IMG/VR virus record: IMGVR_UViG_3300048672_001051
Coordinates: 62,001-126,000 of that record
Strand: one strand, 5' to 3'
DNA length: 64,000 nt
A model generated the notes under the pieces. That model was given only the letters and a program-made list of their open reading frames with translations, had not been told where the DNA came from and did no database searches. A program made the translations under genes and the position numbers. Of this stretch, positions 23,068 to 62,234 are shown in pieces (the first letter of the stretch is position 1; each line of letters begins with the position of its first letter).

Positions 23068-23870
23068 TTAGGTGTTTTAAAATTGAGTTTTTGAAATCTA
23101 TTTTGGCTACAATTTTCAGTATATGGGCATTGTAAACAATTGTTTAGGCGAGGTAAGTTTTGAATGTCACTACGAGTGTAATTAGAAGTATCGTGAAGTA
23201 TATTAGCATACTCAAAATAGCTATCAAGTATTTTATAATTTTTATTAGTAAATTTAGTTAATATGTTGGAAGTATCTATCCAAGTAATATGTAAGTAGGA
23301 AGGTATTAAATTAATTGTTTTTAAATAAGCTATAGTTCTAGCAATAGTTAAATAATTATAATATGACGGTATTTCTGAAGTATAAGGAAGTATTAAATAT
23401 AAAGTATAAATATTATTTTTAATTAAGATAGAAGGTAGTTGGTAAGTATAATTATAAATAGCGTCTGTAAAAGGAATTTGAATTGGCTGTGACATACTAT
23501 CAAAAGTTTTAAAATACTCTGTAATATAATCAATTTGATTTTCAATATTTAACCAAGACTTAGCTAAGTTGGCTAATTTAAAATCTACAAATTTATTCTC
23601 TTTTTGTAAATATCCTGTCATATTTGACATATAATATTTTTCAAGTTCTAGCTTTACAGCAGTTTTTACATTTAAAAAATTAATTAAAATACAATAAGTT
23701 AAATAGCTATGAAATATATCTGGAGTATTTTTGTATAAAGCTGATTTATTATAATCAAATAAAGTATTAAAATTATTATAACGATCAGAGTAAGCTAATA
23801 TGTTAGGACAAATCTGCTTCAGCTCGTAGTCAGAAGCAGACTTGAAGAGTCTAGGTGTTGTTTCTAGCAT
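23064..23870 (-). CDS. hypothetical protein, possible degenerate PD-(D/E)xK nuclease
   Basis: C-terminal CLQCPYTENC resembles the Cas4/AddB Fe-S tail; no clear catalytic motif. Confidence 0.45.
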   Translation of the reverse strand: MLETTPRLFKSASDYELKQICPNILAYSDRYNNFNTLFDYNKSALYKNTPDIFHSYLTYCILINFLNVKTAVKLELEKYYMSNMTGYLQKENKFVDFKLANLAKSWLNIENQIDYITEYFKTFDSMSQPIQIPFTDAIYNYTYQLPSILIKNNIYTLYLILPYTSEIPSYYNYLTIARTIAYLKTINLIPSYLHITWIDTSNILTKFTNKNYKILDSYFEYANILHDTSNYTRSDIQNLPRLNNCLQCPYTENCSQNRFQKLNFKTPK

Positions 23871-24070
23871 GAACCTATGCTGTCAGTGTAGTTGTGACTG
23901 TGAGCATAGAATAACTCAATAAACTCTCTGAGTTGATTAGTGTCTTCAGCTTTAATTTCATCACCTACGGAAATGCGACGAGTATTGTACGCACTAAAGG
24001 AAGATCCATTACTCCACTGAGGTCTTTCGACCCCACCTTCAACATATAAAGGGGCTGTTGTTTCAGGCAT
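23864..24070 (-). CDS. small hypothetical protein (68 aa)
   Basis: ORF with biased codon usage, ending HSHNYTDSIGSC. Confidence 0.6.
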   Translation of the reverse strand: MPETTAPLYVEGGVERPQWSNGSSFSAYNTRRISVGDEIKAEDTNQLREFIELFYAHSHNYTDSIGSC

Positions 24071-24071
24071 T

Positions 24072-25283
24072 TTAAAGTACCATTAAATAGTTATTACTTA
24101 TATCGTAAACGATATTTGACTCAGTATCTTCAACTGCCAAAATTCTAGTGTAATACCCAAGTTCATCTGTAATTATATTCGGAGTTATAACATCCGCTGA
24201 CGAATCTGTAAGAACAGCTATATTATATTGGGAATTATTTTCTAAAATTTGAGTAGGTATTTTCAACAAATAACCAAAAGATTTAATATTAAATACTATA
24301 TCAATGGTATGCGAAGCTTCTCTTTCATTTTCAAAAGCTATGAAAGATTTGAAAAATAATTCAAGTACCTCTTTACTGACGTTGTAAAAGTCTTTAAAGG
24401 CTGTAGCTTGAATCTGCAGTGCAAGGTCTATCATTGGAATACAATTTATAGATAACACTGAACTATTTTCAACTACTTTTTCAATAAAGTCAATTTTTAA
24501 TTTGTTAAAAAATGTTACTAATTTAGATTTAACATTAGTTTCAAAATTATTAGATAAATCAAAAGTAAAAGTCAAACACTTTGTAGTATAACCATCATAC
24601 TTTGTATGTTTTAAATTACTTGTATTTTCGCCGTAATATATAGCGGCTAGAATATAATTTATAAAATTAGCGTCTATTACTACATAATTTGAAATAGAAT
24701 TACTACTACCTTCAACTAGCATATCAATAAATTTTGGAATTGTTAAGTCATAAGTATTTTTAATATATTTCTCAATGTCTTTTACATACGGATCTGCATC
24801 TGCTGATTCATACATAAAATAATCAGCTAATAATTTATAGCTAATTTTTAAATCTCTTGATATTTGATACAAATGTTGATTTGGATAATAAGCTTTATTA
24901 TTGACTAGTGTAATATAAGAAAATCTTTTAGAAAGATTAATTACTTCTTTCGGGCTAGTATTAACATAATCAATCCAAGGCACAAAAAAGTAATCATCAA
25001 CATCGTAGGTAGCAGCAGGCTGAGATTCAACTTCATCTGTAACACATACGGTGTTGAAGCCTTTAAGTCTAAAATCTGGAGACACAGTTAATGTCAATCC
25101 AGTACTTAATTCAAAAGTTGTAAAAACTACAGGTTCATCAAGAGTTAATGAAAAAGGTTTTAATATATTTTTAGTGGCGCCAGTATCAAGATATATATTA
25201 GACCTGTCTACTGAGCTGATTGGAAGAAAACCATTAACACTATAAGTTAAAAAGTTTTCTGGGATAAGTGTTTGTAAATTCAT
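24072..25283 (-). CDS. degenerate intein-like (Hint + LAGLIDADG-like) free-standing protein
   Basis: Block A-like LIPENFLTYSVNGFLPISSV, block B-like FELSTGLTLTVSPDF, YILAAIYYGE, block F-like RILAVEDTESNIVYDIS; no Cys1, TxxH His or terminal Asn. Confidence 0.6.
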   Translation of the reverse strand: MNLQTLIPENFLTYSVNGFLPISSVDRSNIYLDTGATKNILKPFSLTLDEPVVFTTFELSTGLTLTVSPDFRLKGFNTVCVTDEVESQPAATYDVDDYFFVPWIDYVNTSPKEVINLSKRFSYITLVNNKAYYPNQHLYQISRDLKISYKLLADYFMYESADADPYVKDIEKYIKNTYDLTIPKFIDMLVEGSSNSISNYVVIDANFINYILAAIYYGENTSNLKHTKYDGYTTKCLTFTFDLSNNFETNVKSKLVTFFNKLKIDFIEKVVENSSVLSINCIPMIDLALQIQATAFKDFYNVSKEVLELFFKSFIAFENEREASHTIDIVFNIKSFGYLLKIPTQILENNSQYNIAVLTDSSADVITPNIITDELGYYTRILAVEDTESNIVYDISNNYLMVL

Positions 25284-25960
25284 ACTTTAAAAAATGGCAA
25301 CTTAAATTTTTTCTTATAAATAAGATCCATTAAAAAATGAAGCTTATCTTTGTAAAGTAACGCTAAATTTTCATCAAGTATGTTCAAACTATTTTTATAA
25401 AAATAATCGAAAACTTCTGATACATTAACGTAAGACTCTTCAGCAATTGTAACTCTGCGACATCTAATCGTAGATGGACTCATGTTATATATGATATAAA
25501 TATTATTAGCTTTTATAGGCTCAAAAAATGAACAAAAATCTTTATATAAACTAAAATCGCTTTGCAATAAATTCGAATCGCCTGGTAAATAATTTGGAGT
25601 ACATGTTAGCAGATAAATTAATTCAATATCACGTTCATTTAAATATGTACATGAAAAATTTTTAACAATTATATTTAAAAAAGTTACTTGTGCTTCGCAA
25701 TTAAAAAAAGTATTTGTAAAATAACCATTTAATAATAAGCTTGTTAAAAAAGATTTTTTAACACTAGGACTTATCTTATGATGATATACAAAAAATAAAC
25801 TTAAAACACTATCTAAATATTCTGCATCTATCAAACTTTGAGTGCTTATAAAAAAATTTGTATGTACAAAAGACATAACACTTTTAAAGTGTTCAAATTC
25901 AGTGTTGCTGCATTGTAAAATATCTTGGATATTTTTAGAATATTGTTCAAGTATTTTCAT
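25280..25960 (-). CDS. hypothetical protein
   Basis: 226-aa ORF, ATGA overlap with the next gene. Confidence 0.55.
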   Translation of the reverse strand: MKILEQYSKNIQDILQCSNTEFEHFKSVMSFVHTNFFISTQSLIDAEYLDSVLSLFFVYHHKISPSVKKSFLTSLLLNGYFTNTFFNCEAQVTFLNIIVKNFSCTYLNERDIELIYLLTCTPNYLPGDSNLLQSDFSLYKDFCSFFEPIKANNIYIIYNMSPSTIRCRRVTIAEESYVNVSEVFDYFYKNSLNILDENLALLYKDKLHFLMDLIYKKKFKLPFFKV

Positions 25961-27335: not shown

Positions 27336-27779
27336 TTATCTGTAAATAACCAATATGTGATTATATTTTGGTAAAAATAATCCTTCTACAAATTTAATGA
27401 AGTTTAAAATTTTAACTTCATTTGCAGCTGTAGGTGTACAAGAGTACACATCTAAAGACATCGCAGCCTTCTCAGGCCAGGTGTGCCAACAAATGTGAGA
27501 CTCACCTAGCACAAGGGCACCAGAAACCCCCTGAGGCTGAAATTGGTGCCCTGCTGTGGCAAGTACATCAAAGCCTGCAGCTAAAGCTGCGTTAGTCAAC
27601 AGTCTTTCAATATAAACAGAAGACTTGTCAAAATAGTTATTAGGAGCACAAGCAGTGAAATCACAAGTAAAGTGACACCCCAAAGATTCTTCGCATTTTG
27701 GATTAATATTCTTCACATGTCGATGTGTATGAGTCATTATCAGGTCTACCGTAAGGACAATACCTACACAACCAATCAC
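27336..27779 (-). CDS. speD: S-adenosylmethionine decarboxylase proenzyme
   Basis: GCHF...DF, HQFQPQGVSG, pyruvoyl-forming ESH, HTWPE, DVYSC. True start probably downstream of 27779 because of overlap with the upstream gene. Confidence 0.9.
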   Translation of the reverse strand: MIGCVGIVLTVDLIMTHTHRHVKNINPKCEESLGCHFTCDFTACAPNNYFDKSSVYIERLLTNAALAAGFDVLATAGHQFQPQGVSGALVLGESHICWHTWPEKAAMSLDVYSCTPTAANEVKILNFIKFVEGLFLPKYNHILVIYR

Positions 27780-28614
27780 CTATCTTAGTAGAAGGATCTG
27801 CCAAGAATTCATTATAAGCTTTTTTAGTTAAAGCACCTTCTGAATATTTTTTAGTAATTTCTTCTGGTGTATATTGAATTTGGTAATCTGGTGGTGGCGG
27901 AACGCCTTGTTTTAAAAATTCAAATAAAAGTTTTTCTTTATCGAGAATATCTTTAGTGCTAAATTTAGTCTCGACATATGTGTACAAAGAGCCATTCCAA
28001 TAAGTTTCAATCACTGGATTTCCCGCTGCATTTATGCTTATTCTAAATTGCTTATTATTATAAAAACTAGTACAGCTTCTGTCGATATAGACTAAATTAA
28101 CATAGTTAACTTCTGAAACAATCATTAAATAACGAATACATTGCAATAAATTTTGATCTTTAGGTTTAGGCGGTTTGTCTACACTTCCAAGAAGTTCTTT
28201 TGCTGCATACCAATTTGCACCACTATATTGCTTTATCTCACTAATTTCATATTCACCACTGAGTGGATTTATATGCAAGATATCTATCTCGCCAGTTACA
28301 AGTTCATCTGGCTTAGATATACGTACAGAGTGATCTACATAAACTTTAATATTTTTGTATTGTTCAATAATCCAAGATTCCCAAAGTTTACCAGCCTCCA
28401 TAACAAAAATATTATAAATTTTTAAAGGGTTACTTCTAGCTGCGCTAGTTTTATTAAACCAAGCCTGTCGTAAACAAGTCCCTAGTGGTACGCCAGAAGT
28501 AGTATACACCATAGCTTCAGAAGGATTCACTGTAGGTATAATACCTCTAGGGTATTTCAATACTGAAGGCTTTAATAAAGATTTTTCGATAGCTTCTAAT
28601 ATATTAAACATCAT
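27703..28614 (-). CDS. Cas4-like PD-(D/E)xK exonuclease (no CRISPR context)
   Basis: GTCLRQAWF, GEIDIL, ISEIK, CRYCPY...C four-Cys arrangement. Confidence 0.75.
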   Translation of the reverse strand: MMFNILEAIEKSLLKPSVLKYPRGIIPTVNPSEAMVYTTSGVPLGTCLRQAWFNKTSAARSNPLKIYNIFVMEAGKLWESWIIEQYKNIKVYVDHSVRISKPDELVTGEIDILHINPLSGEYEISEIKQYSGANWYAAKELLGSVDKPPKPKDQNLLQCIRYLMIVSEVNYVNLVYIDRSCTSFYNNKQFRISINAAGNPVIETYWNGSLYTYVETKFSTKDILDKEKLLFEFLKQGVPPPPDYQIQYTPEEITKKYSEGALTKKAYNEFLADPSTKIGDWLCRYCPYGRPDNDSYTSTCEEY

Positions 28615-29350
28615 CTTCTTCTTGATAAAAAGATCTTACAATTGGAGCTTTGTCGACATCGTTAATAAAGATTTTGCTAAAAACTTTAATAACAGTATCT
28701 TTTTCATAGCTTGCAATATATTTACTGTAAGTATCTATATGGGCTAGCTTAGCAGCTAAGTAACTATAAAACGGAGTGTAGTCGGCGTTAGAGTGATCGT
28801 AACCCATGTACATAAGTAAAGAACCAGATGTTTTTAAATTATCATAAATTTGTCTAACAAAATCTTTATTATAAATACCTATATCTATATCTTCAAAGTC
28901 GTCGGAACAATCTACAAGAATTAAATCAAATTTAGATTTAAAACACTCGTCTTCCAAAGCATCTTGAAATGTCATATCAACTAGCGTAAGTTTATGAGTA
29001 TCTAAGTTTTCATCAATTTTATTGACAAAAGATGAAGTCTTTAAAAATCTTTTAAAAGGTTCTTCAGTGTATTTATAAGCTAACGGATCAACAATAGTTA
29101 CGTTTGAAGCAACATGTTGAATTGTTTTATAAACTTGTTGGTCTCCACCACCGATAATCAAAATATTTTGATTAGGTTTTAGAAACTTAGCGACAGCTAA
29201 CGACCACATTTTTTGATAGATAAAATATTCTTCCGAAGATAATTCTATAATGTCGTTAGTTGAAATTCGCCAAGGACTGTTAGAATCTTCCAGGTTAGAA
29301 GCTTCTAGTGTTAATTTAATGTTGTCAGTTATAATAGAGTAAGTTTGCAT
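28604..29350 (-). CDS. speE: spermidine synthase-like aminopropyltransferase
   Basis: ILIIGGGDQ SAM-binding loop, FDLILVDCSD, YNKDF..IYDNLKTSG; speD two genes downstream. Confidence 0.7.
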   Translation of the reverse strand: MQTYSIITDNIKLTLEASNLEDSNSPWRISTNDIIELSSEEYFIYQKMWSLAVAKFLKPNQNILIIGGGDQQVYKTIQHVASNVTIVDPLAYKYTEEPFKRFLKTSSFVNKIDENLDTHKLTLVDMTFQDALEDECFKSKFDLILVDCSDDFEDIDIGIYNKDFVRQIYDNLKTSGSLLMYMGYDHSNADYTPFYSYLAAKLAHIDTYSKYIASYEKDTVIKVFSKIFINDVDKAPIVRSFYQEEDDV

Positions 29351-29355
29351 GTAAT

Positions 29356-29883
29356 CTAGTGTGTTATTTTAATATTATTTATGTCAGTTATGCCATAAAG
29401 ATCTAAAGTATCTTTATTTAAGGAACTAGCTGGAGCATGGCAAATTAGCCATTCTTTCCGTATTGTGTGAATTTTTAAATTCGGTACAAGCTTTTTAACT
29501 TCATTTGCAATAAACATTGCCCACGTATCAAATTCAATATATTCATAGTTGTTATCAACAATATATTGAAGACCTCTTAATGTTGCAATTTTTAAACAAG
29601 AGACTATAGATAATGGACAACTTCTTGGATGTATAAATATAGTAGCACCAACAGCTTTTGAGTGGTGATCAATATCTTGTACAAAAAATCCTACTATTTT
29701 ATTATTTTTATTTACAATATAAACTTCAGGCTCTTGAATTAAATTCCAAAATTCTTCTAAAGTATCAATTTCAGATTTAAAATCATTTATTGCATAGCAG
29801 TGATTAAAACAGTCTATTAAAAAAGCAGAAAAACCTCTACTTGTTCCGACTGTTACAGGTGTTAATGTTATCATTCTGGCCAA
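29356..29883 (-). CDS. GNAT-fold-like protein
   Basis: YIVNKNNKIVGFFV and ATIFIHP pattern typical of GNAT strands; weak match. Confidence 0.45.
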   Translation of the reverse strand: MARMITLTPVTVGTSRGFSAFLIDCFNHCYAINDFKSEIDTLEEFWNLIQEPEVYIVNKNNKIVGFFVQDIDHHSKAVGATIFIHPRSCPLSIVSCLKIATLRGLQYIVDNNYEYIEFDTWAMFIANEVKKLVPNLKIHTIRKEWLICHAPASSLNKDTLDLYGITDINNIKITH

Positions 29884-30407
29884 TCACCATTATTTGTAAA
29901 GTAATTAAAAAATATTTCTGAATTTTTAGCCCAATCACTTGGTAATTCAGAATGTTGATAGTCTTCAATAAGCATTATAATATTTGCAGAACTTTTATTT
30001 ATAAATCTGTGCGGCAACGACGCATTAAAATAAAGAGACTCATTAGTAAACTCTTGGCGTATACCATCAACTTCTAAATAAATATCATTTAAGTTTAACT
30101 GATTAGCATTTAAGACAGTAAGAACTCTTGTACAAAAAGTTGCAGTAAATTCAGAGTCAGTATGAATGTTTGTTTCAAAACCAGGTTGGAAACAAACATA
30201 AGATACAGCAAATGGTAATTTATTTTCATAAAAGTCTTTAAAGACTTTTATGAGTTTAGTAGGAAACTGTTGTGCAAAACGATTGTTTAAAACAACTGGG
30301 TAATACTGCCATAGCGGACTATCTTCAATTAAAATATCATCTGAAACTAAAACAGGTTTAGACTTTAAAGAATATTTATCAAAGATAATATAATGTGGAT
30401 TAGACAT
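29871..30407 (-). CDS. cupin/2OG-Fe(II) oxygenase-like (Asp beta-hydroxylase-like) protein
   Basis: QPGFETNIHTD (HxD) and distal FNASLPH..IN; jelly-roll pattern. Confidence 0.7.
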   Translation of the reverse strand: MSNPHYIIFDKYSLKSKPVLVSDDILIEDSPLWQYYPVVLNNRFAQQFPTKLIKVFKDFYENKLPFAVSYVCFQPGFETNIHTDSEFTATFCTRVLTVLNANQLNLNDIYLEVDGIRQEFTNESLYFNASLPHRFINKSSANIIMLIEDYQHSELPSDWAKNSEIFFNYFTNNGDWPE

Positions 30408-31608
30408 TTAAAGTGTTACTAGAAAATTGTGAATAAAGCTCAATGTACCTATTAACAAGTAAACTATAACTTGAATTTAAAATAGAGTCATCAAACACTG
30501 TATTATTAATATAATAAAATGTTAAATCCATTAATAAAAATAAAGGTGTAATTAAATCTTTAGATTTTTGTTGAAGCCACCAGACATCATCTTCAACAAT
30601 ATGCAACTGTTCAAACTGGAAAGATTTGACAGGGCAAGGTGTTATGATATCAAAACGCCTAGTAGACTCTTGATATTCATCACTATTTTTATTTAACTGA
30701 AGTTCTTGAATATTGATTAATTTTAAATCGTTATTTGTTTTATAAATAAGATTCTTATTTTTTAAATACTCTTTATTGTTGATTAAATTACTTTCTTCAT
30801 TAGCCGCTAAATCTCTACAGTAGTAGATGTTACCCCGAGGAGATATCGACCTAACACCGTCAAGACAAGACTTATTTGAAGGATTTTTAAAATACTCAGC
30901 TGAACTTAAAAATTCTCTAGGCACAGAAAAATAACAAAAATCTTCCGCGACAGTATTATTATCAATTGTTTTTAGATTATTTGGTAAAATATTATTTACA
31001 ATTAAATCTGAAACAACTTTAAAATCTGTAGGTTTAACAAATTTTTTAACATTGTCTTCCCATATAGAACCTATTTCAAAGTGAAAATAACGTACACCTA
31101 AGTTTTTAAAATAATTAAAATTATTATTTAAACTAGCAAAATTTAGCTCACTAAATAAAACTAGAGCAACGCCTACACTACAATCTAACGAAATTAACAA
31201 TTTAAGATTGTCGATAATATTTGAATAAATTTTAGGATTAGTTGTACGTTCTAAATTAGTGGTATAAGTACCATCTACGGAGAAAATTATCTCATCAAAT
31301 CTTTGCCAAGTTTGAGAATCTTCTTGGACTTTTAAATTATAATGACCGTTAGTGTAGATTCTAAAATGAACATTTTCATATTTAGAATCTACATACTCCA
31401 TAAGGTCTTTAATATTTTGCCAGTGAATAGTAGGCTCACCGCCAAAAAACTCAATTAAATTCTGCTCATCTTTATACTTAGTTAGATAATAATCTACAAA
31501 ATTTACAGAGTCTTCATAACTTAAAAAAGGTGAAGTATTTTTGTTAGTAATACAACAATAACTACAATCTAAATTGCAGTAATTACTATAAACAACTGTA
31601 AGGTCCAT
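30400..31608 (-). CDS. radical SAM enzyme with SPASM/twitch-like C-terminus
   Basis: CNLDCSYC, FFGGEPT, TNG, FSVDG, KSCLDG...GNIYYC, later PCP. Confidence 0.88.
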   Translation of the reverse strand: MDLTVVYSNYCNLDCSYCCITNKNTSPFLSYEDSVNFVDYYLTKYKDEQNLIEFFGGEPTIHWQNIKDLMEYVDSKYENVHFRIYTNGHYNLKVQEDSQTWQRFDEIIFSVDGTYTTNLERTTNPKIYSNIIDNLKLLISLDCSVGVALVLFSELNFASLNNNFNYFKNLGVRYFHFEIGSIWEDNVKKFVKPTDFKVVSDLIVNNILPNNLKTIDNNTVAEDFCYFSVPREFLSSAEYFKNPSNKSCLDGVRSISPRGNIYYCRDLAANEESNLINNKEYLKNKNLIYKTNNDLKLINIQELQLNKNSDEYQESTRRFDIITPCPVKSFQFEQLHIVEDDVWWLQQKSKDLITPLFLLMDLTFYYINNTVFDDSILNSSYSLLVNRYIELYSQFSSNTLNV

Positions 31609-32204
31609 TAGGTACCACTATGCAAGTCTATAAGTGTTTTTTGTTTTTCAACATCATCTTTAATTGAAAATAAAGCACTAACACTATCTAAATCAGGGTA
31701 TGTGTTATTAGTGTTAAACGTATATGATTGTGCTAATGATCGCAAGTTATTTACAGCAGCTTCAAGCTGTAGAACTTCTTCAAATCCTAAATTATTTGTA
31801 GGATAGCATTGTTCTAATGCTGCATAAGCTTCATAAAAAGCATTAATAGATCTTGTGACAACTTGCAATTTGTTGCTAGTAATTGTATTAAAATTTACGG
31901 CACAAAGAGCGAGTTGTAAATTAGCTTTAGTCACAAAATAAATAACATTAGGTTCATAGTCATTTTGATCAACAATACTAATTAATTTTTGAATTAAAGG
32001 TATCATCGCTTCATCTATGTTATCACGAAGTTCGAGTGAAAGCGTAAATAAGAAATTAATATTATTTAGTTTAGAGATGAAAGTGGGATTATTTAAAATC
32101 CCACTTTCATGAGTTGAGTATAGAGTGTTAATTAAATCTAAATCTTCAAGATTGTAAATCATTAATTGGTATAACTTTGTAAAGATTATAAAATTGCTCA
32201 TCAA
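31608..32204 (-). CDS. hypothetical alpha-helical protein
   Basis: 198-aa ORF coupled (TAATG) to the radical SAM gene. Confidence 0.55.
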   Translation of the reverse strand: MMSNFIIFTKLYQLMIYNLEDLDLINTLYSTHESGILNNPTFISKLNNINFLFTLSLELRDNIDEAMIPLIQKLISIVDQNDYEPNVIYFVTKANLQLALCAVNFNTITSNKLQVVTRSINAFYEAYAALEQCYPTNNLGFEEVLQLEAAVNNLRSLAQSYTFNTNNTYPDLDSVSALFSIKDDVEKQKTLIDLHSGT

Positions 32205-34647
32205 TGATGAGGCTTGTTAATAGTGTTTTATTCGCAGGTGAATTTAAATCAACACCTTCAGATAAATCTGAAGTAGTAATACTGATTGCCTCGCGATACA
32301 GATCTTTTGTAAAAGAAGTCGCAGGAAGTCTAGTGCTAAAAAATTCAAGAATATACTCTCTATTATAGACGCTATTAAGGCCTCTTTTATGAGTATATCC
32401 AAAATAAAATTTAGCTTCCGGAGTACCTAAATTGGTTAAACCAAAAGGTGGACTCTGGTCGACAGTTTTTGAATAAAACTTGAAAACTTTAAAATCAAAA
32501 TTTTCTAAATTGTCTTCAAGTAACTTTTTAATTAAAAAGTAAATATTAAAAAATAATTTAGAAGATCCATGAGGATTTAATTGTACGAGTTTATTGATAA
32601 TAGTCAATACAGCACTTGAGTTATCAACAAGTTTATTGTATAAGTTTTGTAAGTTAGCACGGTCTTGTGCATAACCAGTCCTCAGCCAAGCATGAGTTTG
32701 ATCTGAAGACTCAATTAAAATTTTAAGAGAATTTCTTAAAAATAATAAAAACTCAGGTAGCTCTGGCCTACTCGAACATATCAAATAATATGTAAAAATA
32801 ACGTTAACAAAATTAAACAATTCTTGGTTTTCTGCGACGAGGACTGAAGGTTCAACTACATTTAAAGCTGAAGCTTTTAAAATATCTATATAAGCTGAAG
32901 CTGCAGTATTAAATTTCGAAGGAGCGTAGTAGATTACTCTAGCAGTAGACTCATACATATTTTTTAAAAAATATTCATGATTTTGATAATCATATTTAGA
33001 AACAGTACCCCCCGGACTTATAAGATCTGTATTTACCAGAATATAATTTTCAAACAAAGGCACTTCTGGATTAATATTTCTAAGAACTCTGTGGTTAGAC
33101 TCTTCAAAAGTATAAATACCGGTATATATTTTATCAGGCGTATCTGAAACAGCTCTAGCACTTTTTAAAGACTCTATAAAAGAAGTATGAGCATCTGATA
33201 AAAATTCAATAGTAATATCGACAGGCTCAACACGACTAAACTGTTGAATAATTCTAGTTATATGAGCTTTGCATTCAACATAATTTTCACGTTTGCAAGA
33301 TGGCTTAGCTTTAATAAAAATTACATTACACTCTAAAGTGTTTATATAAGTATCTAAAGTCTTTAGTGGTATATTTCTATCAACTAAAATTATTTTATAA
33401 ATACCAGTACTTACAGTTCTTCGAGTGTATGACATACTAAAATTAACTGGAGAACAATATGTGTAAATAATATTAGATAAATTTCTAATAAAAATATTAT
33501 CAGCATGTTGTGGACTTATCAGCCCTAAACATTCTTCATATCTAATATTTAAATGATCTTTAATATACATTTTAAATCTAATATCACGCTGAATATAATC
33601 TTTGATAACTAATAAATTATCAATATACGTAGTAAAATATTCAGGTCTTGTAAAGTTTGGGTATTTAATTTCAACAGAGAGTTGATGCGTTAGCACATTT
33701 GAATTAAAATCTTGTTTAATTAAGTCGTATTTATTTTTAAGCTTACCTTCATTTCCAGATACAATTGTTATAAATTCACGAGATGGTGTAAAAAGCAACT
33801 CACCAATATTAAATTTTGGTATTATTCTAAAATTAAAAGCAGATGGATTTGAATTCCGGTTATAATTACTTTGATGTGTAAATAGCATATTTTCATAAGG
33901 ATTTGTAAATATATTAGAACCTTGTGTAATATATTTAAAAGAATCTTCAAAGTATGTCGGGTCAGTTATTAAATAATAATGCATGTATTCTTCTACAGAA
34001 TACCAAAAGTTATCTTCAAGTTGTACGTTATTAACATAAACATTTGGTTTAACATTTAAGCATATTAAAACTTGTTTTAATTTTTTTAGTACAATATCTT
34101 TAGTGTAATTCTTAATTGTGTAAACACAAGTTACACCTACAGGTTCATCTAAACATTCTTCTGTCACAATATTAAATATTGGTACAGCATTATCTTGACG
34201 ATAGAATAAAACAGTGTGTTTTAATCCGTCTTTAACACAAAAATATTTAAAGTTATTTGTCAATGCTAAAGGACTTTTAGCACCTAAACCTAAGCAGCCA
34301 GCAAGTGCCGGATCAGCACGCTTACTAGAACTATTCAAAGTGCAAAGATAAGTTTCAGCATCTTGTGCAGTTAAACCAACACCATAATCTTTAATAGAAA
34401 TAGTTAATTCGGCATTGTACATATCTTCTTCTATTAAAATATCGTAAGGGGCTGTTGGCTTGCCAGCGCTTATGTGTGAATCAAAAGCGTTGGAGCAAGT
34501 CTCACGTAATACTGAACCCAGCTTGTCTTGATAAATATCGTCAATAACTGTCGAGAAAGACATAAAGTCTGTTTGAATACCCATCTCTTTAGCTGTAGGT
34601 ATCTTAGCTAGAATACTTGATGTATCAGGTGCGTTAATAATTTTCAA
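32146..34647 (-). CDS. rIIA: rIIA-like protein with N-terminal GHKL ATPase
   Basis: LRETCSNAFDSH, IKDYGVGL, GCLGLGAKSP, GVT motifs; 833 aa. Confidence 0.8.
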   Translation of the reverse strand: MKIINAPDTSSILAKIPTAKEMGIQTDFMSFSTVIDDIYQDKLGSVLRETCSNAFDSHISAGKPTAPYDILIEEDMYNAELTISIKDYGVGLTAQDAETYLCTLNSSSKRADPALAGCLGLGAKSPLALTNNFKYFCVKDGLKHTVLFYRQDNAVPIFNIVTEECLDEPVGVTCVYTIKNYTKDIVLKKLKQVLICLNVKPNVYVNNVQLEDNFWYSVEEYMHYYLITDPTYFEDSFKYITQGSNIFTNPYENMLFTHQSNYNRNSNPSAFNFRIIPKFNIGELLFTPSREFITIVSGNEGKLKNKYDLIKQDFNSNVLTHQLSVEIKYPNFTRPEYFTTYIDNLLVIKDYIQRDIRFKMYIKDHLNIRYEECLGLISPQHADNIFIRNLSNIIYTYCSPVNFSMSYTRRTVSTGIYKIILVDRNIPLKTLDTYINTLECNVIFIKAKPSCKRENYVECKAHITRIIQQFSRVEPVDITIEFLSDAHTSFIESLKSARAVSDTPDKIYTGIYTFEESNHRVLRNINPEVPLFENYILVNTDLISPGGTVSKYDYQNHEYFLKNMYESTARVIYYAPSKFNTAASAYIDILKASALNVVEPSVLVAENQELFNFVNVIFTYYLICSSRPELPEFLLFLRNSLKILIESSDQTHAWLRTGYAQDRANLQNLYNKLVDNSSAVLTIINKLVQLNPHGSSKLFFNIYFLIKKLLEDNLENFDFKVFKFYSKTVDQSPPFGLTNLGTPEAKFYFGYTHKRGLNSVYNREYILEFFSTRLPATSFTKDLYREAISITTSDLSEGVDLNSPANKTLLTSLIIDEQFYNLYKVIPINDLQS

Positions 34648-40294: not shown

Positions 40295-42688
40295 TTAAAC
40301 ACATGAAGTATAATTAGCAACACTATTAAGAACTTGATAATGTTGCAATGCTTTTGTTGTAGTACCGGTAGAGCCGTAACGAGCAACATACGCTTGAGCT
40401 GCTGAAACATCTTCACCAGCTAAATGAGTGCGAATGATCTCTTGAACAGTCCGGTAATCATCAAGTGTACGAGAGGCTGACATATTTGAACCACTAATAA
40501 AAGTAACTTTTTTATGTGTGACAATTTCAGTCAAAACACATTGAAATAAGTTAGCTAGTAGTGACGCAGCAATATCATTGCCACTGAACATTTGCTCAGG
40601 ATTATCGTCAGTACCTCGAGCGTCTACCTCAGCACAGGATTCTATTTGAACTTCTTCAAAGTCGCTAAAAATATCTGCATGATCAATTGTATAATAATCA
40701 CGACCTAAACGGTTGTAATAAACTTGACCATTAAATAAATTAACGCCAGCAGAAAAATAGTAATTATTCCAGTTAAATGCTTCAGAATTAGCTGAGATAT
40801 ACAAATCTAATGCTTTTTTAAAACCTTCATTATCGACTAAATTCATAACATGACTTGTATTATCAATACCAATATCTTTGATATCAATAAATAAATCAAG
40901 ATCGCGATTTAGGTCAGCAGGATTTTCATAAGCAAATTCATCGTAGTCTGAATAGTAGCCAAACTTCGGCAAGTACGAAACAGTGATATTTTGATATAAA
41001 CCGTTGTAACGGTTTGACAAAACTTCAGCTTTGTTTAAGCCAATATCTGCTGAAATAAAGTTCTGCCGAAGCAAATTCTTTTGTTCCCATTTGTTACAAT
41101 TTGAAACTTAGATATTTATTATATTTTCTATCTAAAAAAATAGAAGAATCTTTGTACAATAAATCTAAGAATGTATTTACATTTTGCTTACCAGAAAGCG
41201 TTAAAGCATAACAGCAATTTTCAGTATTAAATCTTTTATATAATTTAGTATTAAATTTAATTGAACAATCAGCCTCAATTAAACTTTTAACTTCATTTAA
41301 AAAAGATTTAGTTCCAGCAATAGATGCACAGTAGCGCGTATAGCCATCCTTACATAAAGATTTAGACATACTGCCATCACCATCAAAGTAACCCCTAATA
41401 AAATGAATAAAAAATTCTTTTGGGATATTTGGAAACTTAAAATCTGTTGTTTTATTTCTGGTAAAACCAAGACTGCGTAATTTGCTAATCATGTGTAAGT
41501 TTGAAAAAGACAGCGAACAAACATTTGTTATTTTGCCAGTAAAGGTACATAACTGTGTAAATGTTTTAATTTTAACGTCACTTTTTAAACAAATTTTAAT
41601 TTTTTCTAAGATTTCAATATCTTTTGAGTTTAATGCAATTTTAAGCTCATAGTCACCGACGTAACCGTCAGCAGCAATAAATCCTAAAATGTAAGCTTTT
41701 TCCTCAGTATTTATGATATCAAAAAAATTATAATCTGCTTTAATAGTATTAAGCCAATCAACTGGCCTTTTAAAATTGTGTCTCTTAGCTAGTGCGTTTA
41801 CATTGACTAGGCTGCAGTTATATTTTATAGCTAACTCTGAAGTTGTCAGACCTTTATCATAATCTTTTAATAAATTTATTACGTCATTTTTAACATGAAA
41901 TAAACCTGCTTTGAATAAACGCCTTTCAGCAGTTTTTTCAGAACAATTTAAAATACGCATAACGTCATTTTTATCAATAAGATTTTTAAAAGAAAGACTT
42001 TTTAAAAGAGTTAACTCTTTAATAATAACATCTTGTTTAATTGGTAAGTACATTATTTTGACTCCTATAATTGTACAATGTGGCGAGACCACTATTGAGA
42101 AAAACAATCATATCAGACAAAATTTCAAACGTCAACCTCCTTTCTGTTCGGGGTTGAACTTTGGCTTGATATTATCTTTAAATAATACCTAGTGTATAAT
42201 ATGCCAAAGAGCAGACTATCGCATAAACTAATGTAATCCCTACATTAGTTTCTCTTTCGCTTAGTCGTTCACGGTGCCTTGAGTTTTAATAGATTTTTAA
42301 ATCTATCTCATGCTTCCGCCTTGTTGTCCTTATACTAGGAGTTCCAAGTCAATTAGAAAGAGTTTTATATCGTCCAACATTAAACGATATCGCCATCAAC
42401 AAGAATAATTTCAACTTTAAAGTTGTGACTACGTTTATGCAAAAGATCATTATAGATCTTTAACAGTTTTGGAAGAATCCAACTTGTAGTACCACCAGCG
42501 CCAAAAATAAATAACTTCTGATCTAAGTACTCCCGTGGAAGCTCTTTTGCATTTTTTAACAGACGAAGAAAAGCAAATTTATCTAACGCATCAATAGCTG
42601 AAATTTTTTCAGGTTGTACTGGACGATATTTAAGTGCACGAATCCACTGCGCCAGTGTGATTTGTTTTAAAATAGGTTCTACTTTCAT
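40295..42688 (-). CDS. ThiF/E1-like adenylyltransferase, two exons (42688-42383, 41086-40295), 365 aa
   Basis: FIFGAGGTTS nucleotide-binding loop; spliced VDGDIV|EQKNLLRQNF; NKAEVL; SCAE...EQ...NDIAA as in PRTRC-type ThiF. Confidence 0.9.
41087..42382 (-). mobile_element. group I intron (1296 nt) in ThiF gene
   Basis: P1 ATATCGTT/GACGATAT ending in U.G; P TTGACTTGGAAC, Q ACAAGGCGGAAG, R GTGAACGACTA, S GCGATAGTCT; terminal G before GAACAA; reading frame restored. Confidence 0.9.
41094..42053 (-). CDS. intron-encoded double-motif LAGLIDADG homing endonuclease
   Basis: YILGFIAADGY and FIRGYFDGDGS; likely start MYLPIKQ with AGGAG upstream. Confidence 0.88.
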   Translation of the reverse strand: MYLPIKQDVIIKELTLLKSLSFKNLIDKNDVMRILNCSEKTAERRLFKAGLFHVKNDVINLLKDYDKGLTTSELAIKYNCSLVNVNALAKRHNFKRPVDWLNTIKADYNFFDIINTEEKAYILGFIAADGYVGDYELKIALNSKDIEILEKIKICLKSDVKIKTFTQLCTFTGKITNVCSLSFSNLHMISKLRSLGFTRNKTTDFKFPNIPKEFFIHFIRGYFDGDGSMSKSLCKDGYTRYCASIAGTKSFLNEVKSLIEADCSIKFNTKLYKRFNTENCCYALTLSGKQNVNTFLDLLYKDSSIFLDRKYNKYLSFKL

Positions 42689-42731: not shown

Positions 42732-45700
42732 TCAGTGTTGCGTGACTAAAGCGTTGTGATAGCTGTCTATCAAGAATTTCGCCTCTTCGGCAGGATCCAT
42801 ACTGTCATACGGTACGTCATCATCAACTACAATAATGCTAGAATTTTCTGCATCAGGCGCAGAAAAAATGTCTTGCTCAGAACCGACAGCCAGAAGACCT
42901 TGATTGAAAAAGTGACTTAATTCATTCAATTGATCTTCTGTAAAAGCTGTTTGATAGCCAACAATATCTAACAAAGTTGTAAACAAGTCTACAATTTCGT
43001 CCATGTTTAGTGGTACAGAAGTTTTAGCGTAATAAGGCGTAGGCAACAAACGTCCCAACAACTTCTCAAACTCTTGCAGTAACCGGTGCTGTTGAGTATC
43101 AATAGCCCAAAGAGTTAAATAGACACTTAACGGCTGATATCTTGGATAAACCGGTGGAACATATGGTTTACCTTTACCAGCAGGTGGTGTATAACCAAGA
43201 GCACCAACTGACTTATTGTACGAAGCAATTTCAACAATTTTATCTTCAGAGCCAGCAGGTACACTGTAATCAGAATCTTCTTGAAGTTTTTCAATATCGC
43301 GATCAAAAATATCGTTAACTTTCAAAACAACTTGTTGTTGATTTGAAGCAGCACGAACAACAATTTCAGGGACTTCATTACTAAGCTTACCAATAACGCC
43401 AAACAAACGAGAAGCCTTCTCGTCGTTTAAATCACCACCACTGAAGAATGCCATAATATTCAATACAGATCGTTAATCTGTACCCGCACCTATTAAAGAT
43501 GCTGCTTATACTTTCATATAAGAGTAGACTATATCTTCTTTCAGTTTAAACTGAAAGCTCTCCATTTCCACCCACTTGGGTGTACGATACTCGATTCATT
43601 CAAAAAGAATGTCTTTCTCTAGTCGTTGAACTTTTACCGTAGAATAAATTCTTTAGGTACTTAGCTGCTGATTATCCAATTCTATTAATTTTCAAACATT
43701 CACACTTATCTTTTCAGATTATGTTGTAGTTTAATAGACTCTTATGAATTAATAATACAATCTAATACATATTTTTCTGTAATTAATTTTTTATAAATAA
43801 TTCTAACTAATTTAATATTATTATCTAAACAATATTGATTTTTAATCTCATCACATTCTTTTGAATATTCTGAGTACCATATATGATTTTCATCATAATG
43901 TTGTAACCCATCCGCTTCAATCATAAGATTTTTAGAGGGGATATAAAAATCAATCCTTAAAGGGTATCCTTTAGGAGATAATAATTTTTCATTAGTATAT
44001 TCACAAATAATATTATTATAATTAGCACTTAATGCATTATAAATATTATTTTCAAAGTTAGAATTACTTTTAAAAAATCCTAGCATATTATTTAAATTAC
44101 ACATTGAAATTTTTAATTTAGTTAAAGTTTTATTAGATCTTTTAATAGTGTTAATAATTTCACTATTAGTACAATATCTATTCTTACTTAAAATAAATTC
44201 TAAAATTTCTTTTTCTACTACCTCTTTAGTTAATTCTTCAGAGGATCTTCGAGCTTTTGCTGCACAAGATTTTGAGCAAAATATGGTATTAAGTGTATAC
44301 TTAGTGCCATACTGCATATTAGTGTATAAATTTAAATATTCTTTATTACAGAATTTACATATTTTTTTATTACTTTTCATATCCTATTTCCAATTATATT
44401 TTAATTTCTGCTATTAAAAAGCATTAATATAATTATAATTGAAAGACTTATCAAAGTCGAGGAAAGGAACTTCCAGCAATTAGAAGAGTTTTACATGAGC
44501 ACATTTAAGCTTTACTCATATCTACATGCGACATTGTAGATGTGTTATGAATTGTTTTTTAATATACAATTCCTTGACAAGAATTTCTTTGTAATATAAA
44601 CTTTACGTCATTACACCATGACTATATAAGTCAAAATTTTACGACATAAAGCAGGTACATTAAAATTTGTTAAAACTAGAAAAATACAAAGACTATATTA
44701 TAACAAATATAGCGCAAAACAAACCAATTAGCATAATAGCTAAAGAGTTAAATGAATACCCTCAAGCAGTTAGAAACGTAATAAAAAAATACTTACCTGA
44801 TAAAAAATTTATACATGATCAGGGAAATATTTCTTATTTTAATAAAATAGACTGTGATGCTAAAGCATACTTTATAGGCTTCATTGCTGCAGATGGATCA
44901 CTAGTAAAACGTAAAAGTGATAATAGCATAGCATTAAGTATAACTATCAATAAAAAAGATAAATTAATACTAGATACTTTAAAAAATTGTATAGGTTGTG
45001 AAAATCCTGTAAGTTTTTTAAAATTAAATGATTTAGTAAGGTTTGTTATACAAAACAAACAAATATCAGATGATCTACAAACTTACGGAATTGAGCCTAA
45101 CAAATCTTTAACTATGCCGTCAATTATTCATAAAATACCGAAAGAATACAGAAAAGCATTCTTAAGAGGTTATTTTGATGGCGATGGTAGTGTATTCAAA
45201 AGTTCTAAAAACAAATATTATGTAACTATAAGAGGCACGTTAGAATTTTTACAAGCATACATAGAAGAGTTTAATTTAAGTTCGTATTCGTTAAAAAAAT
45301 ACGATTACGAAAAAATTGGGAAATTAACAACAGGGTCTAAAGACTCTATTAAAAAATTTATAACTATGTATGAAAATTCTGAAATACACTTACAAAGAAA
45401 ACATGAAATATTTTTAAATTTCATGGAAAAACATTGTCAAGATCAGACTATCTCATCACCCTAGTTTAACTAGGGTGTGCGGCACTCGTGTCGGTCTTAT
45501 TGGACTAGATCCTCAACCGTTAGTCGTTACACCCAACTGACTACTTTTACTCTATTCGTCAGTCTTGGCACGGTATTGTCCTTTTTCTAGGAGTTTCACC
45601 GTTAGCATTAACTATATTAGTTAACACACCCTTTTCAGGTTCACCGCATTATTCAATTAGCATTACTGCTAAAGGCCACTCGCTTTTAATGGATATCCAT

Positions 45701-46111
45701 AACGATGAAAAAGTTTGAATTGTTAAGCATCGCAGGATCATTTTGAAAATTAACTGTAGCCCCACCAACACGTTGTTCAGGCACATACAGAAAATAGTCT
45801 TGCTTTGCAATATCCCAATAAATTGAGATATACACTTCTGATCGCATCTTATTTTTAATAACGCGGAAAAATTCAACGATATTAGTAAGAAGTGCGACGG
45901 GAATTTTCGGAAGTGCAGAAACGTAGCTAACTTCACAAGTTTGATTAAGACCTAAACGCTTTAGGTCAATCTTATCAATTTGAATAGTAAAAGTGCCTAC
46001 AGGCTCTTTACGACGTTGCCAAATACCATTAGCAAAAGCAGCGTTTGAGAACTTTTTAGTTTCATCAAAACATTCTACTGTAAAGCCATTTAAATCAGGA
46101 AACATACTCAT
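42732..46111 (-). CDS. JAB/MPN metalloprotease (PRTRC protein A-like), three exons (46111-45689, 44531-44514, 43451-42732), 386 aa
   Basis: Spliced sequence reads ...SEV...VPEQ...MDIH|SHVDMS|AFFSGGDLNDE, the canonical E...HSH...S..D JAB motif. Confidence 0.9.
43452..44513 (-). mobile_element. group I intron B of JAB gene (1062 nt)
   Basis: P1 ATGAGT/GCTCAT; P10 AATGT/GCATT; P ATTGCTGGAAG, Q AATCAGCAGC, R GTTCAACGACTAG, S AAGATATAGTCT; ends ...ATTATG. Confidence 0.92.
43742..44380 (-). CDS. intron-encoded Vsr/EDxHD-like homing endonuclease
   Basis: CKFC...FCSKSC zinc motif; RIDFYIPSKNLMIEADGLQHY...DEIKNQYC. Confidence 0.8.
   Translation of the reverse strand: MKSNKKICKFCNKEYLNLYTNMQYGTKYTLNTIFCSKSCAAKARRSSEELTKEVVEKEILEFILSKNRYCTNSEIINTIKRSNKTLTKLKISMCNLNNMLGFFKSNSNFENNIYNALSANYNNIICEYTNEKLLSPKGYPLRIDFYIPSKNLMIEADGLQHYDENHIWYSEYSKECDEIKNQYCLDNNIKLVRIIYKKLITEKYVLDCIINS
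44574..44602 (+). promoter_or_regulatory. sigma70-like promoter for the antisense endonuclease
   Basis: TTGACA (44574-79), 17 nt, TAAACT (44597-602), 65 nt upstream of the plus-strand ORF. Confidence 0.65.
44667..45464 (+). CDS. LAGLIDADG homing endonuclease, antisense within intron A
   Basis: YFIGFIAADGSL and FLRGYFDGDGSV; homologous to the 41094-42053 enzyme. Confidence 0.88.
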   Translation: MLKLEKYKDYIITNIAQNKPISIIAKELNEYPQAVRNVIKKYLPDKKFIHDQGNISYFNKIDCDAKAYFIGFIAADGSLVKRKSDNSIALSITINKKDKLILDTLKNCIGCENPVSFLKLNDLVRFVIQNKQISDDLQTYGIEPNKSLTMPSIIHKIPKEYRKAFLRGYFDGDGSVFKSSKNKYYVTIRGTLEFLQAYIEEFNLSSYSLKKYDYEKIGKLTTGSKDSIKKFITMYENSEIHLQRKHEIFLNFMEKHCQDQTISSP

Positions 46112-61949: not shown

Positions 61950-62234
61950 TTAAAGTTGCTCATCTTCATCCAAATATTCTACAACAACATCGGTCGACCA
62001 AGGTTTAGCTGAAAACATATAATTAACTCTATCAATAAAGTGATAACCGTTAAGTATAATTAAAGATCCGCCAGTATCAACAAGAGTCCAAATTAAAGAA
62101 TCATGATTTTTTGAAATAAACTCAAGATCTTTGCCATATGTTTCAAAAAGACCGGCCTCATTTCCAGATTCTGTGGGGCCTAAATAGGGTGAATATTGTT
62201 CAACCCACTCATCATAAGTTAAATTTGTAGACAT
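61950..62234 (-). CDS. hypothetical protein
   Basis: 94 aa; [21 protein letters not shown]. Confidence 0.55.

Follow-up and report, generated by a model that had tools for sequence, protein, structure and literature searches.

The window analysed here, 64,000 nucleotides (positions 62,001 to 126,000) of IMG/VR record IMGVR_UViG_3300048672_001051, belongs to a 229.7-kb freshwater phage and carries a tightly coupled run of seven genes on the minus strand between positions 27336 and 32204. In the order of transcription these encode a helical protein, a radical SAM enzyme (rSAM), an oxygenase, a GNAT-fold protein, a divergent SpeE-like aminopropyltransferase, a Cas4-like nuclease and the S-adenosylmethionine decarboxylase SpeD. 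The junctions are a 1-nt overlap (TAATG) from helical to rSAM, an 8-nt overlap from rSAM to oxygenase, a 4-nt overlap (ATGA) from oxygenase to GNAT, a 5-nt gap from GNAT to SpeE-like, an 11-nt overlap from SpeE-like to Cas4-like and, taking the ATG at 27737 as the SpeD start, a 35-nt overlap from Cas4-like to SpeD. The observation made in the initial annotation was therefore confirmed, and six of its seven gene identities held, the exception being the helical protein, for which no family match was found. Tight packing alone is normal in phages, and what puts this run above chance is that the order is kept in distant relatives.

We first examined each product of the run. The helical protein (31608..32204, minus strand) is 198 aa as an ORF, but its start is probably at Met15 (32162), judging by the gene call in L002, the 91%-identical relative of the window. 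Its homologues sit directly upstream of the rSAM gene in most relatives, although the family is poorly conserved and has no invariant residue. The rSAM (30400..31608, minus strand, 402 aa) matched Pfam PF04055 at 3e-12 and carries CxxxCxxC at residues 11-18 (C11, C15 and C18). Alignment of 33 homologues revealed that only C248, C264 and C325 are invariant in the auxiliary region, and there was no PF13186 hit; this fits a single three-Cys, twitch-like auxiliary cluster and not a seven-Cys SPASM domain with two clusters. When the family profile was searched, the best hit was the thioether-forming peptide maturase CteB (5WGG) at 1.6e-23, about eight orders of magnitude ahead of the next hit, followed by TigE, ChlB, anSME and SkfB, all of which act on peptides or proteins. 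Foldseek with an AF2 model (pLDDT 88.3) gave the same ranking, with the small-molecule enzyme BlsE also among the structural hits, and the best NCBIfam hits were PapB, SCIFF and CXXX-repeat maturases. The enzyme has no N-terminal RiPP-recognition domain, since its cluster motif starts at residue 11 and the CteB alignment starts at CteB residue 99, after the recognition domain of that protein. The rSAM family was not found in 185,579 bacterial and archaeal species genomes, and no close homologue was present in the isolated-phage collection.

The oxygenase (29871..30407, minus strand, 178 aa) has H82-T-D84 and H133, consistent with the HxD...H iron triad of a cupin-type Fe(II)/2OG enzyme resembling Asp/Asn beta-hydroxylases. 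Its nearest ESM Atlas clusters, by feature and structure matches, are viral PF05118 Asp/Asn hydroxylases (structural TM 0.78), although Pfam itself gave no hit at E<=0.01. The GNAT-fold protein (29356..29874, minus strand, 172 aa) had no Pfam or NCBIfam acetyltransferase hit, but its AlphaFold model (pLDDT 89.5) has a GNAT fold, with Foldseek probability 1.0 to many GNATs at TM about 0.57 and a VIA-align Z of up to 12.9, the best being to the polyamine acetyltransferase SpeG, only marginally ahead of other GNATs. The family has 79 representatives at 50% clustering. In the loop where acetyl-CoA pyrophosphate normally binds, the canonical motif A, Q/R-x-x-G-x-G/A, is not present; the consensus is F-x-H-P-x-x-C-K-M-S, the last position being S, A or G, with Cys86 kept in 43 of 47 members.

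The SpeE-like protein (28604..29350, minus strand, 248 aa) matched PF01564 at 27.5 bits against a cut-off of 22.9, whereas the NCBIfam equivalog models scored far below cut-off (39.5 against 260, and 33.7 against 249.55), indicating that it is a superfamily member and not an orthologue of SpeE. It aligned to solved spermidine synthases over residues 32-177, and V-D147-C-S-D150-D aligned with VDSSDP of Plasmodium spermidine synthase. GGGD67-70, VD88P, D147 and D150 are conserved in 17, 18, 17 and 14 of 18 family members, respectively; the acidic residue of the GGG(D/E)G loop selects decarboxylated SAM (dcSAM) over SAM, and the D-x-x-D pair deprotonates and positions the attacking amine. The N-terminal beta-strand domain that helps to close the putrescine pocket is shortened, with only about 31 residues preceding the core against about 50-90 in the solved enzymes, and no N-terminal domain hit in Pfam. 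The Cas4-like PD-(D/E)XK protein (27703..28614, minus strand) gave only weak PHROG and TIGR00372 hits (TIGR00372 18.6 bits against a cut-off of 65), but has four candidate cluster cysteines, C47, C283, C286 and C300, the last three forming a C-terminal CxxC...C, which are conserved in a relative, L004; it has no CRISPR context. SpeD (27336..27779, minus strand, with the start probably at the ATG at 27737) matched PF02675 at 5.5e-22 and TIGR03330 at 77.0 bits against a cut-off of 75.65. The Glu93-Ser94 cleavage site, His99, Pro102 (in H99-T-W-P102-E) and Cys114 are kept, and Pro together with the Ser/His/Cys triad marks bona fide AdoMetDC as opposed to SpeD-derived arginine decarboxylases (PMC10407285). 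It is a class 1b enzyme and the only copy in the genome.

To determine which of these genes form a conserved unit, we compared the locus with about twenty distant relatives. Conservation of gene order in relatives had been set beforehand as a test of the pathway, and it was passed strongly: rSAM, GNAT-fold and SpeE-like genes are adjacent in all 18 relatives with enough sequence (loci L001, L003, L005-L016 and L046-L049), at 25-51% identity, with the GNAT-fold gene always between the other two. A helical partner was detected upstream in most. SpeD is adjacent in the window, L001, L002 and L005, is fused to a SpeE-like paralogue in L049, and lies elsewhere, often about 20 kb away, in 5 of 5 complete genomes of the DnaE-type relatives; it was found in every complete genome tested. 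The cassette always sits in the replication module, and in most relatives lies between the two halves of a split DnaE polymerase gene. All carriers belong to one broad phage clade, so shared synteny is partly inheritance. By contrast, the oxygenase was found only in the window and L002, indicating a lineage-specific accessory gene. The Cas4-like nuclease is a backbone replication or recombination gene and probably not part of the pathway: Acinetobacter phage vB_AbaM_ME3 keeps it (gp071, 38% identity) but lacks rSAM and SpeD, and in the DnaE-type relatives it lies downstream of DnaE_C, away from the trio.

We also found a further companion of the trio that lies outside the interval of the initial annotation and had not been seen there. 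This gene, g68 (23864..24070, minus strand), encodes a 68-aa protein in which Trp19, His57-x-His59, Asp63, Gly66 and a Cys as the very last residue are invariant. It is present in all 18 loci that include the region and absent from ME3, and independent IMG/VR scans with rSAM and with g68 returned exactly the same 9 contigs. In the DnaE-type relatives the operon reads g68-hel-rSAM-GNAT-SpeE, with touching or overlapping genes and the small gene first, as in RiPP clusters. Searches for a known family matching g68 returned none. It is the candidate substrate or partner of the radical SAM enzyme. In the window's own lineage, however, g68 lies about 3 kb downstream of SpeD (about 6 kb from the rSAM gene), behind unrelated genes.

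Collectively, these data partly support the interpretation in the initial annotation, that linkage of SpeD and SpeE to peptide-maturase-type enzymes suggests aminopropylation, hydroxylation and acylation of a specific target such as a virion protein, peptide or DNA base. The linkage of SpeD and SpeE to a peptide-maturase-type rSAM and a GNAT-fold protein holds, and a candidate peptide target exists in g68. The oxygenase is not a conserved member, the nuclease is a backbone gene, acylation is uncertain because the GNAT-fold family lacks the canonical acetyl-CoA loop, the DNA-base option has little support, and the proposed analogy to microcin C does not hold.

The shared, phage-only gene set looks built to attach aminopropyl groups to something other than ordinary putrescine, most plausibly g68 itself. 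Our tentative best reading is a phage-restricted, RiPP-like modification cassette supplied with dcSAM made by the phage, which would cross-link and aminopropylate g68. The sequences show or strongly indicate that SpeD is a bona fide pyruvoyl AdoMet decarboxylase making dcSAM, that the SpeE-like enzyme keeps the dcSAM-selective motif and the catalytic Asp pair and so should transfer aminopropyl groups, and that the rSAM belongs to the SPASM/twitch group of peptide maturases, closest to the Cys-directed thioether synthase CteB; an open iron site in its auxiliary cluster is inferred. The chemistry itself and the following steps are also inferred. In this view, g68 is the substrate, and the rSAM, perhaps helped by the helical protein in place of the missing recognition domain, would cross-link or otherwise oxidise its terminal Cys. 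The SpeE-like enzyme would add one or more aminopropyl groups, and lineages with two or three paralogues may add more. The GNAT-fold protein would tailor or handle the product, and the oxygenase would be an optional extra step in this lineage. No direct evidence ties the SpeE-like or GNAT-fold proteins to g68, and a complex prediction of rSAM, helical protein and g68 scored 0.02, which gave no answer either way. Moreover, g68 is conserved along its whole length and looks like a small folded protein rather than a leader-plus-core peptide, some homologues have no Lys, so that the acceptor atom is not evident, and no protease or exporter was seen. Twitch enzymes such as BlsE act on small molecules, and the SpeG-like structural matches of the GNAT-fold protein fit a small-molecule route equally well.

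A small-molecule route to an unusual polyamine is doubtful but nearly as likely. Here dcSAM would be used by the SpeE-like enzyme and its paralogues to aminopropylate a host diamine or polyamine, and the GNAT-fold protein and rSAM would tailor it by acylation, oxidation or C-C/C-H chemistry, the product serving DNA condensation, translation or host takeover; g68 would then be an unrelated small replisome-region protein or an enzyme subunit. This is in line with documented phage SpeD/SpeE pairs that make spermidine (PMC9992855), the conserved amine-deprotonating Asp pair, the SpeG and BlsE structural matches, and SpeE-like paralogue expansion in L005 and L049, which fits stepwise chain extension. 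No diamine-forming decarboxylase is in the genome, so a host amine would be the acceptor. On the other hand, the closest rSAM relatives by sequence profile are peptide maturases, this route gives no role for the strictly co-occurring g68, the SpeE-like enzyme is far from cellular SpeE and N-terminally shortened, and the lack of a detected cellular counterpart of the rSAM family is unusual for an acquired metabolic gene.

Hypermodification of phage DNA or a nucleotide precursor with an aminopropyl-containing group, to evade restriction, is poorly supported and rated unlikely. In this reading the rSAM and GNAT-fold proteins would act in an Elp3- or Mom-like way. The location in the replication module and the phage-only distribution would be compatible with it, and radical chemistry combined with a GNAT fold is known from Mom (PMC7261163); Elp3 provides another case. 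However, the genome has a single ThyA homologue that scores as a canonical thymidylate synthase (280 bits; TIGR03284 263 bits), with DHFR adjacent. Pathways based on 5-hmdU are marked by a dUMP hydroxymethylase in place of thymidylate synthase, a 5-hmdU DNA kinase and an amino-group transferase, and the comparison here rests on the first of these. Known polyamine-thymine pathways take host polyamines through a dedicated DNA transferase (PMC13458397), and no gene in the cassette resembles that route. No DNA-binding or base-flipping motifs were recognised, and the rSAM is not close to Elp3 or QueE. Plain spermidine synthesis, in which SpeD and SpeE simply raise spermidine in the infected cell and the other genes are unrelated neighbours, is equally unlikely, because despite the intact catalytic motifs of both enzymes and the published precedent (PMC9992855), the SpeE-like gene is highly divergent and is never seen without the adjacent GNAT-fold and rSAM genes in 18 loci spanning two different genome architectures, whereas SpeD itself is often distant.

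We then compared the cassette with known systems. ME3 (Metrivirus), the nearest isolated relative found, has rIIA, a divergent GNAT-fold gene (gp073) and the Cas4-like gp071 in the same order, followed by ribonucleotide reductase genes, and its gene in the SpeE position (gp072, 156 aa) shows at most a weak resemblance. In microcin C maturation (MccB/MccD/MccE) a peptide likewise carries an aminopropyl group and a GNAT domain is in the cluster, but that group comes from SAM through carboxy-aminopropyl transfer plus a PLP decarboxylase and not from dcSAM through a SpeE-type enzyme. Unlike a MccB-type E1-like adenylating enzyme dedicated to the peptide, the ThiF/E1-like gene of the phage, about 10 kb away, does not track the cassette, being a backbone gene also present in ME3, which lacks the pathway. 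SpeG and other GNAT polyamine N-acetyltransferases share the predicted fold, but the phage protein has no sequence-family match and has x-x-C-K-M-S in place of their acetyl-CoA loop. The phage and virus SpeD/SpeE pairs of Li et al. 2023 (PMC9992855) also cluster a class 1b AdoMet decarboxylase, with the residues of bona fide AdoMetDC, with an aminopropyltransferase; in those, however, the phage SpeE is close to gammaproteobacterial SpeE and stands in a simple gene pair, while here it is very divergent and invariably coupled to rSAM and GNAT-fold genes. Finally, among RS-SPASM/twitch RiPP maturases, the sactisynthase CteB (5WGG/5WHY) aligns over the radical SAM core plus the start of the auxiliary-cluster domain, and a small gene for a Cys-containing product likewise heads the operon. 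The phage enzyme differs in lacking the recognition domain and in having three conserved auxiliary Cys instead of seven, its putative substrate is a fully conserved 68-aa protein with a single C-terminal Cys, no protease or transporter is present, and the genes reside in a lytic phage genome rather than a bacterial cluster.

The window comprises bases 62,001-126,000 of a single 229,656-bp contig with 34.7% GC from a freshwater metagenome, which belongs to a large tailed phage. The neighbourhood holds an rIIA-like gene, thymidylate synthase, DHFR, RecA-like and RuvC-like genes and a ThiF-like gene. When the region was compared by megablast, and the SpeE-like and radical SAM proteins by tblastn, with 50,697 phage records, nothing useful was found, and no close relative is present in this isolated-phage collection. 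We first asked whether the gene run described in the initial annotation exists. Seven same-strand ORFs were found within 27336-32204, with junctions that overlap by 1-35 nt or are separated by 5 nt, and the observation therefore holds. The radical SAM enzyme (PF04055, 3e-12), SpeD (PF02675, 5.5e-22; TIGR03330 77.0 bits against a cut-off of 75.65) and the SpeE-like protein (PF01564, 27.5 bits against 22.9) were recognised directly. The oxygenase had no Pfam hit but carries H82-x-D84...H133, and its nearest ESM Atlas clusters by features and by structure are PF05118 Asp/Asn hydroxylases. The GNAT protein had no sequence-family hit, whereas a confident AlphaFold model (pLDDT 89.5) showed a GNAT fold with its best Z-scores to SpeG. 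The Cas4-like protein gave weak nuclease-family hits and has the four-cysteine pattern, and the helical protein matched nothing. A promoter and terminator scan was uninformative in this AT-rich DNA.

To determine which of these genes are conserved, we collected relatives. Only five proteins in 5.8 billion resemble the SpeE-like enzyme at word level, and scans of IMG/VR with single proteins found nothing, so that alignment-based scans were needed. The contigs of these five proteins, together with those of radical SAM homologues, gave 18 informative loci from at least six diverged lineages, and family HMMs were run over all of their ORFs. We found that the radical SAM, GNAT-fold and SpeE-like genes are adjacent in every locus that contains the region, with identity to the window proteins going down to 25-30%. 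A poorly conserved helical protein precedes the radical SAM gene in most loci, and a 68-aa protein, termed g68, is always present; in the window it is encoded at 23864-24070 (minus strand), outside the interval drawn in the initial annotation. In contrast, the oxygenase, which had been counted as part of the pathway, occurs only in the window and in its 91% relative, locus L002. One distant relative, L006, carries a different cupin in the cassette instead, a 140-aa protein (L006:7579-8001) between the helical and radical SAM genes that matches the PHROG 'cysteine dioxygenase' family, which is of interest given the terminal Cys of g68. The Cas4-like gene is usually nearby but not inside the cassette.

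Two genome architectures were identified. The first, which includes the window, reads helical - rSAM - (oxygenase) - GNAT - SpeE-like - Cas4-like - SpeD - ... - g226 - g403 - g68, where g226 and g403 (window 24072-25960, minus strand) are two conserved genes without an assigned function that always precede g68 in the window's lineage. The second reads DnaE N-part - g68 - helical - rSAM - GNAT - SpeE-like - DnaE C-part - Cas4-like. Thus, in most relatives (loci L006-L016 and L046-L048) the cassette sits between the N- and C-terminal parts of a split DnaE-type DNA polymerase, the C-terminal part being further broken up by inteins and LAGLIDADG homing endonucleases. A tblastn search with the DnaE proteins of the relatives found no match in the window's own genome (E<=1e-4), and hhalign comparisons were negative for g403 or g226 as cryptic DnaE pieces or as relatives of the helical protein, and for g68 as a DnaE fragment. 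Interrupted genes were also seen elsewhere in these genomes. The ThiF/E1-like gene (window 40295-42688, minus strand), which is intact as 372 aa in the relative L001, is interrupted in the window by a 337-aa LAGLIDADG endonuclease ORF (41094-42107) that could be an intron or an intein. A second gene (window 43260-46111, homologue of L001:1666-2790) is split into two pieces with a plus-strand LAGLIDADG ORF (44667-45464) between them, and in L002 (2236-3940) the thymidylate synthase gene, intact in the window, is split by an HNH endonuclease ORF.

We next examined the link to SpeD, which is adjacent to the cassette only in the first architecture. All five complete genomes of the second type that were tested carry a SpeD homologue about 20 kb away. 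Furthermore, in the relative L049 a SpeE-like domain (residues 13-206) and a SpeD domain (residues 213-311) are fused in one 347-aa protein (L049:13987-15048), while another relative, L005, has three SpeE-like and two GNAT-fold paralogues. The SpeD of the window keeps the Glu-Ser cleavage site, the catalytic His and Cys, and the Pro that distinguishes bona fide AdoMetDC from SpeD-derived arginine decarboxylases (PMC10407285). On the basis of this Pro and the TIGR03330 score, the possibility that it is a neofunctionalised arginine or ornithine decarboxylase was rejected. The genome has one SpeD, one radical SAM gene, one ThyA and no PLP ornithine/arginine decarboxylase.

Acinetobacter phage vB_AbaM_ME3, the only isolated phage with a clear homologue of any of these genes, served as a natural negative control. 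Its gene order is rIIA - rIIB - gp073 - gp072 - gp071 (Cas4-like, 38% identity), followed by one further hypothetical gene (gp070) and the RNR genes. We found that gp073 is a divergent member of the GNAT-fold family (HMM 1.5e-10, hhalign probability 94%), whereas gp072 shows only a weak, inconclusive resemblance to the C-terminal half of the SpeE-like family. ME3 has no radical SAM gene, no SpeD and no g68, although it has a g226 homologue (gp079). These results indicated that the Cas4-like nuclease, listed within the gene run by the initial annotation, is a backbone gene, and that radical SAM, SpeD, g68 and a fully equipped SpeE-like enzyme are gained or lost together. A ThiF/E1-like enzyme that activates the g68 C-terminus was considered, but was rejected as pathway-specific because the ThiF-like gene is also present in ME3 and does not track the cassette. 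In the window the rIIA-like gene (32146-34647, minus strand, 833 aa) is followed by the helical protein and not by a recognisable rIIB, while ME3 has rIIA followed by rIIB at this position. However, the helical protein showed no similarity to ME3 rIIB. A profile of the helical family gave weak ferritin and RNR-R2 hits (E 0.02-0.2), which were discounted because the family has no conserved metal ligands.

To gain insight into the enzymes, we compared each with characterised families. The SpeE-like protein aligns with solved spermidine synthases over residues 32-177, and across 18 family members the GGGD loop, the VDP ribose-binding acid and the D147/D150 pair are kept. We therefore infer, from sequence alone, that it is a working dcSAM-dependent aminopropyltransferase. 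It scores far below the SpeE equivalog cut-offs and has a shortened N-terminal region. Its acceptor need not be putrescine. For the radical SAM enzyme, 33 homologues share the CxxxCxxC motif and three further invariant cysteines, in the motifs SPRGNIYxCRD and TxCPVK, indicating one auxiliary cluster. A profile of the family hit the sactisynthase CteB at 1.6e-23, followed by the cyclopropyl synthase TigE (PMC10878394), ChlB, the sulfatase maturase anSME and SkfB, and Foldseek on a confident model (pLDDT 88.3) gave the same order. The alignment begins after the recognition domain of CteB, and the phage enzyme has none. A search with the radical SAM alignment found no true relative in 185,579 bacterial and archaeal species genomes, whereas the ESM Atlas holds many viral clusters of the family. 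The GNAT-fold family has 79 representatives at 50% clustering, and its alignment was too variable for a pattern scan of genomes. It lacks the canonical acetyl-CoA loop and has a near-invariant Cys at that position, in the consensus F-x-H-P-x-x-C-K-M-S, so acyl-CoA use cannot be assumed.

We then analysed g68. Fifteen sequences were aligned, of which twelve make up the alignment from which the invariant residues are taken; these share Trp19, Asp37, Asp43, Asn45, Arg48, His57-x-His59, Asp63, Gly66 and a Cys that is always the final residue. An IMG/VR scan seeded with g68 returned exactly the nine contigs found with the radical SAM alignment. Comparison with Pfam, PHROGs, NCBIfam and PDB sequences gave no meaningful match, and the ESM Atlas gave only unnamed small viral clusters. 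Some homologues contain no lysine; if g68 is aminopropylated, the acceptor would have to be the terminal thiol, the N-terminus or a histidine.

Our data thus support the proposal in the initial annotation of a pathway that modifies a specific target only in part. What the analysis shows is a conserved, phage-only module in which dcSAM supply and an aminopropyltransferase, assigned by sequence, are bound to a peptide-maturase-type radical SAM enzyme. That g68 is the substrate is an inference, which rests on its position at the head of the operon in most relatives, its strict co-occurrence with the radical SAM family and the Cys-directed nature of the enzyme's nearest relatives. The one direct computational test, a complex prediction of the radical SAM enzyme, the helical protein and g68, scored 0.02 and was uninformative either way. 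In the boldest form of this view, g68 would be aminopropylated post-translationally by a SpeE-type enzyme using dcSAM made by the phage, after a thioether or related modification of its C-terminal cysteine by the CteB-like radical SAM enzyme. We consider this somewhat less likely than not on present evidence, although it is not excluded. If true, it would be a new kind of protein or peptide modification and a new use of the polyamine machinery, maintained only in a clade of large lytic phages.

The main alternative is a tailored small-molecule polyamine, which would be a new phage-made polyamine. It fits the predicted SpeG-like fold of the GNAT protein and the paralogue expansions, but leaves g68 unexplained. 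DNA hypermodification is suggested only by the location inside the replication module, and a canonical thymidylate synthase with DHFR argues against the thymidine (5-hmdU) routes. Plain spermidine synthesis does not explain the invariant coupling.

Targeted full-text literature searches found no description of a radical SAM / GNAT / aminopropyltransferase cassette, nor of peptide aminopropylation by a SpeE-type enzyme, which we believe is undescribed. Phage speD is usually read as a simple boost to host polyamine synthesis, and phage SpeD and one phage SpeD/SpeE pair have been characterised as spermidine-making genes (PMC9992855). In the cassette described here, dcSAM production is instead tied to a divergent aminopropyltransferase that never occurs, in the loci examined, without a peptide-maturase-type radical SAM enzyme, a GNAT-fold protein and a small Cys-terminal protein. 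The cassette is built from known kinds of parts, although it could represent a new modification chemistry if the peptide model holds.
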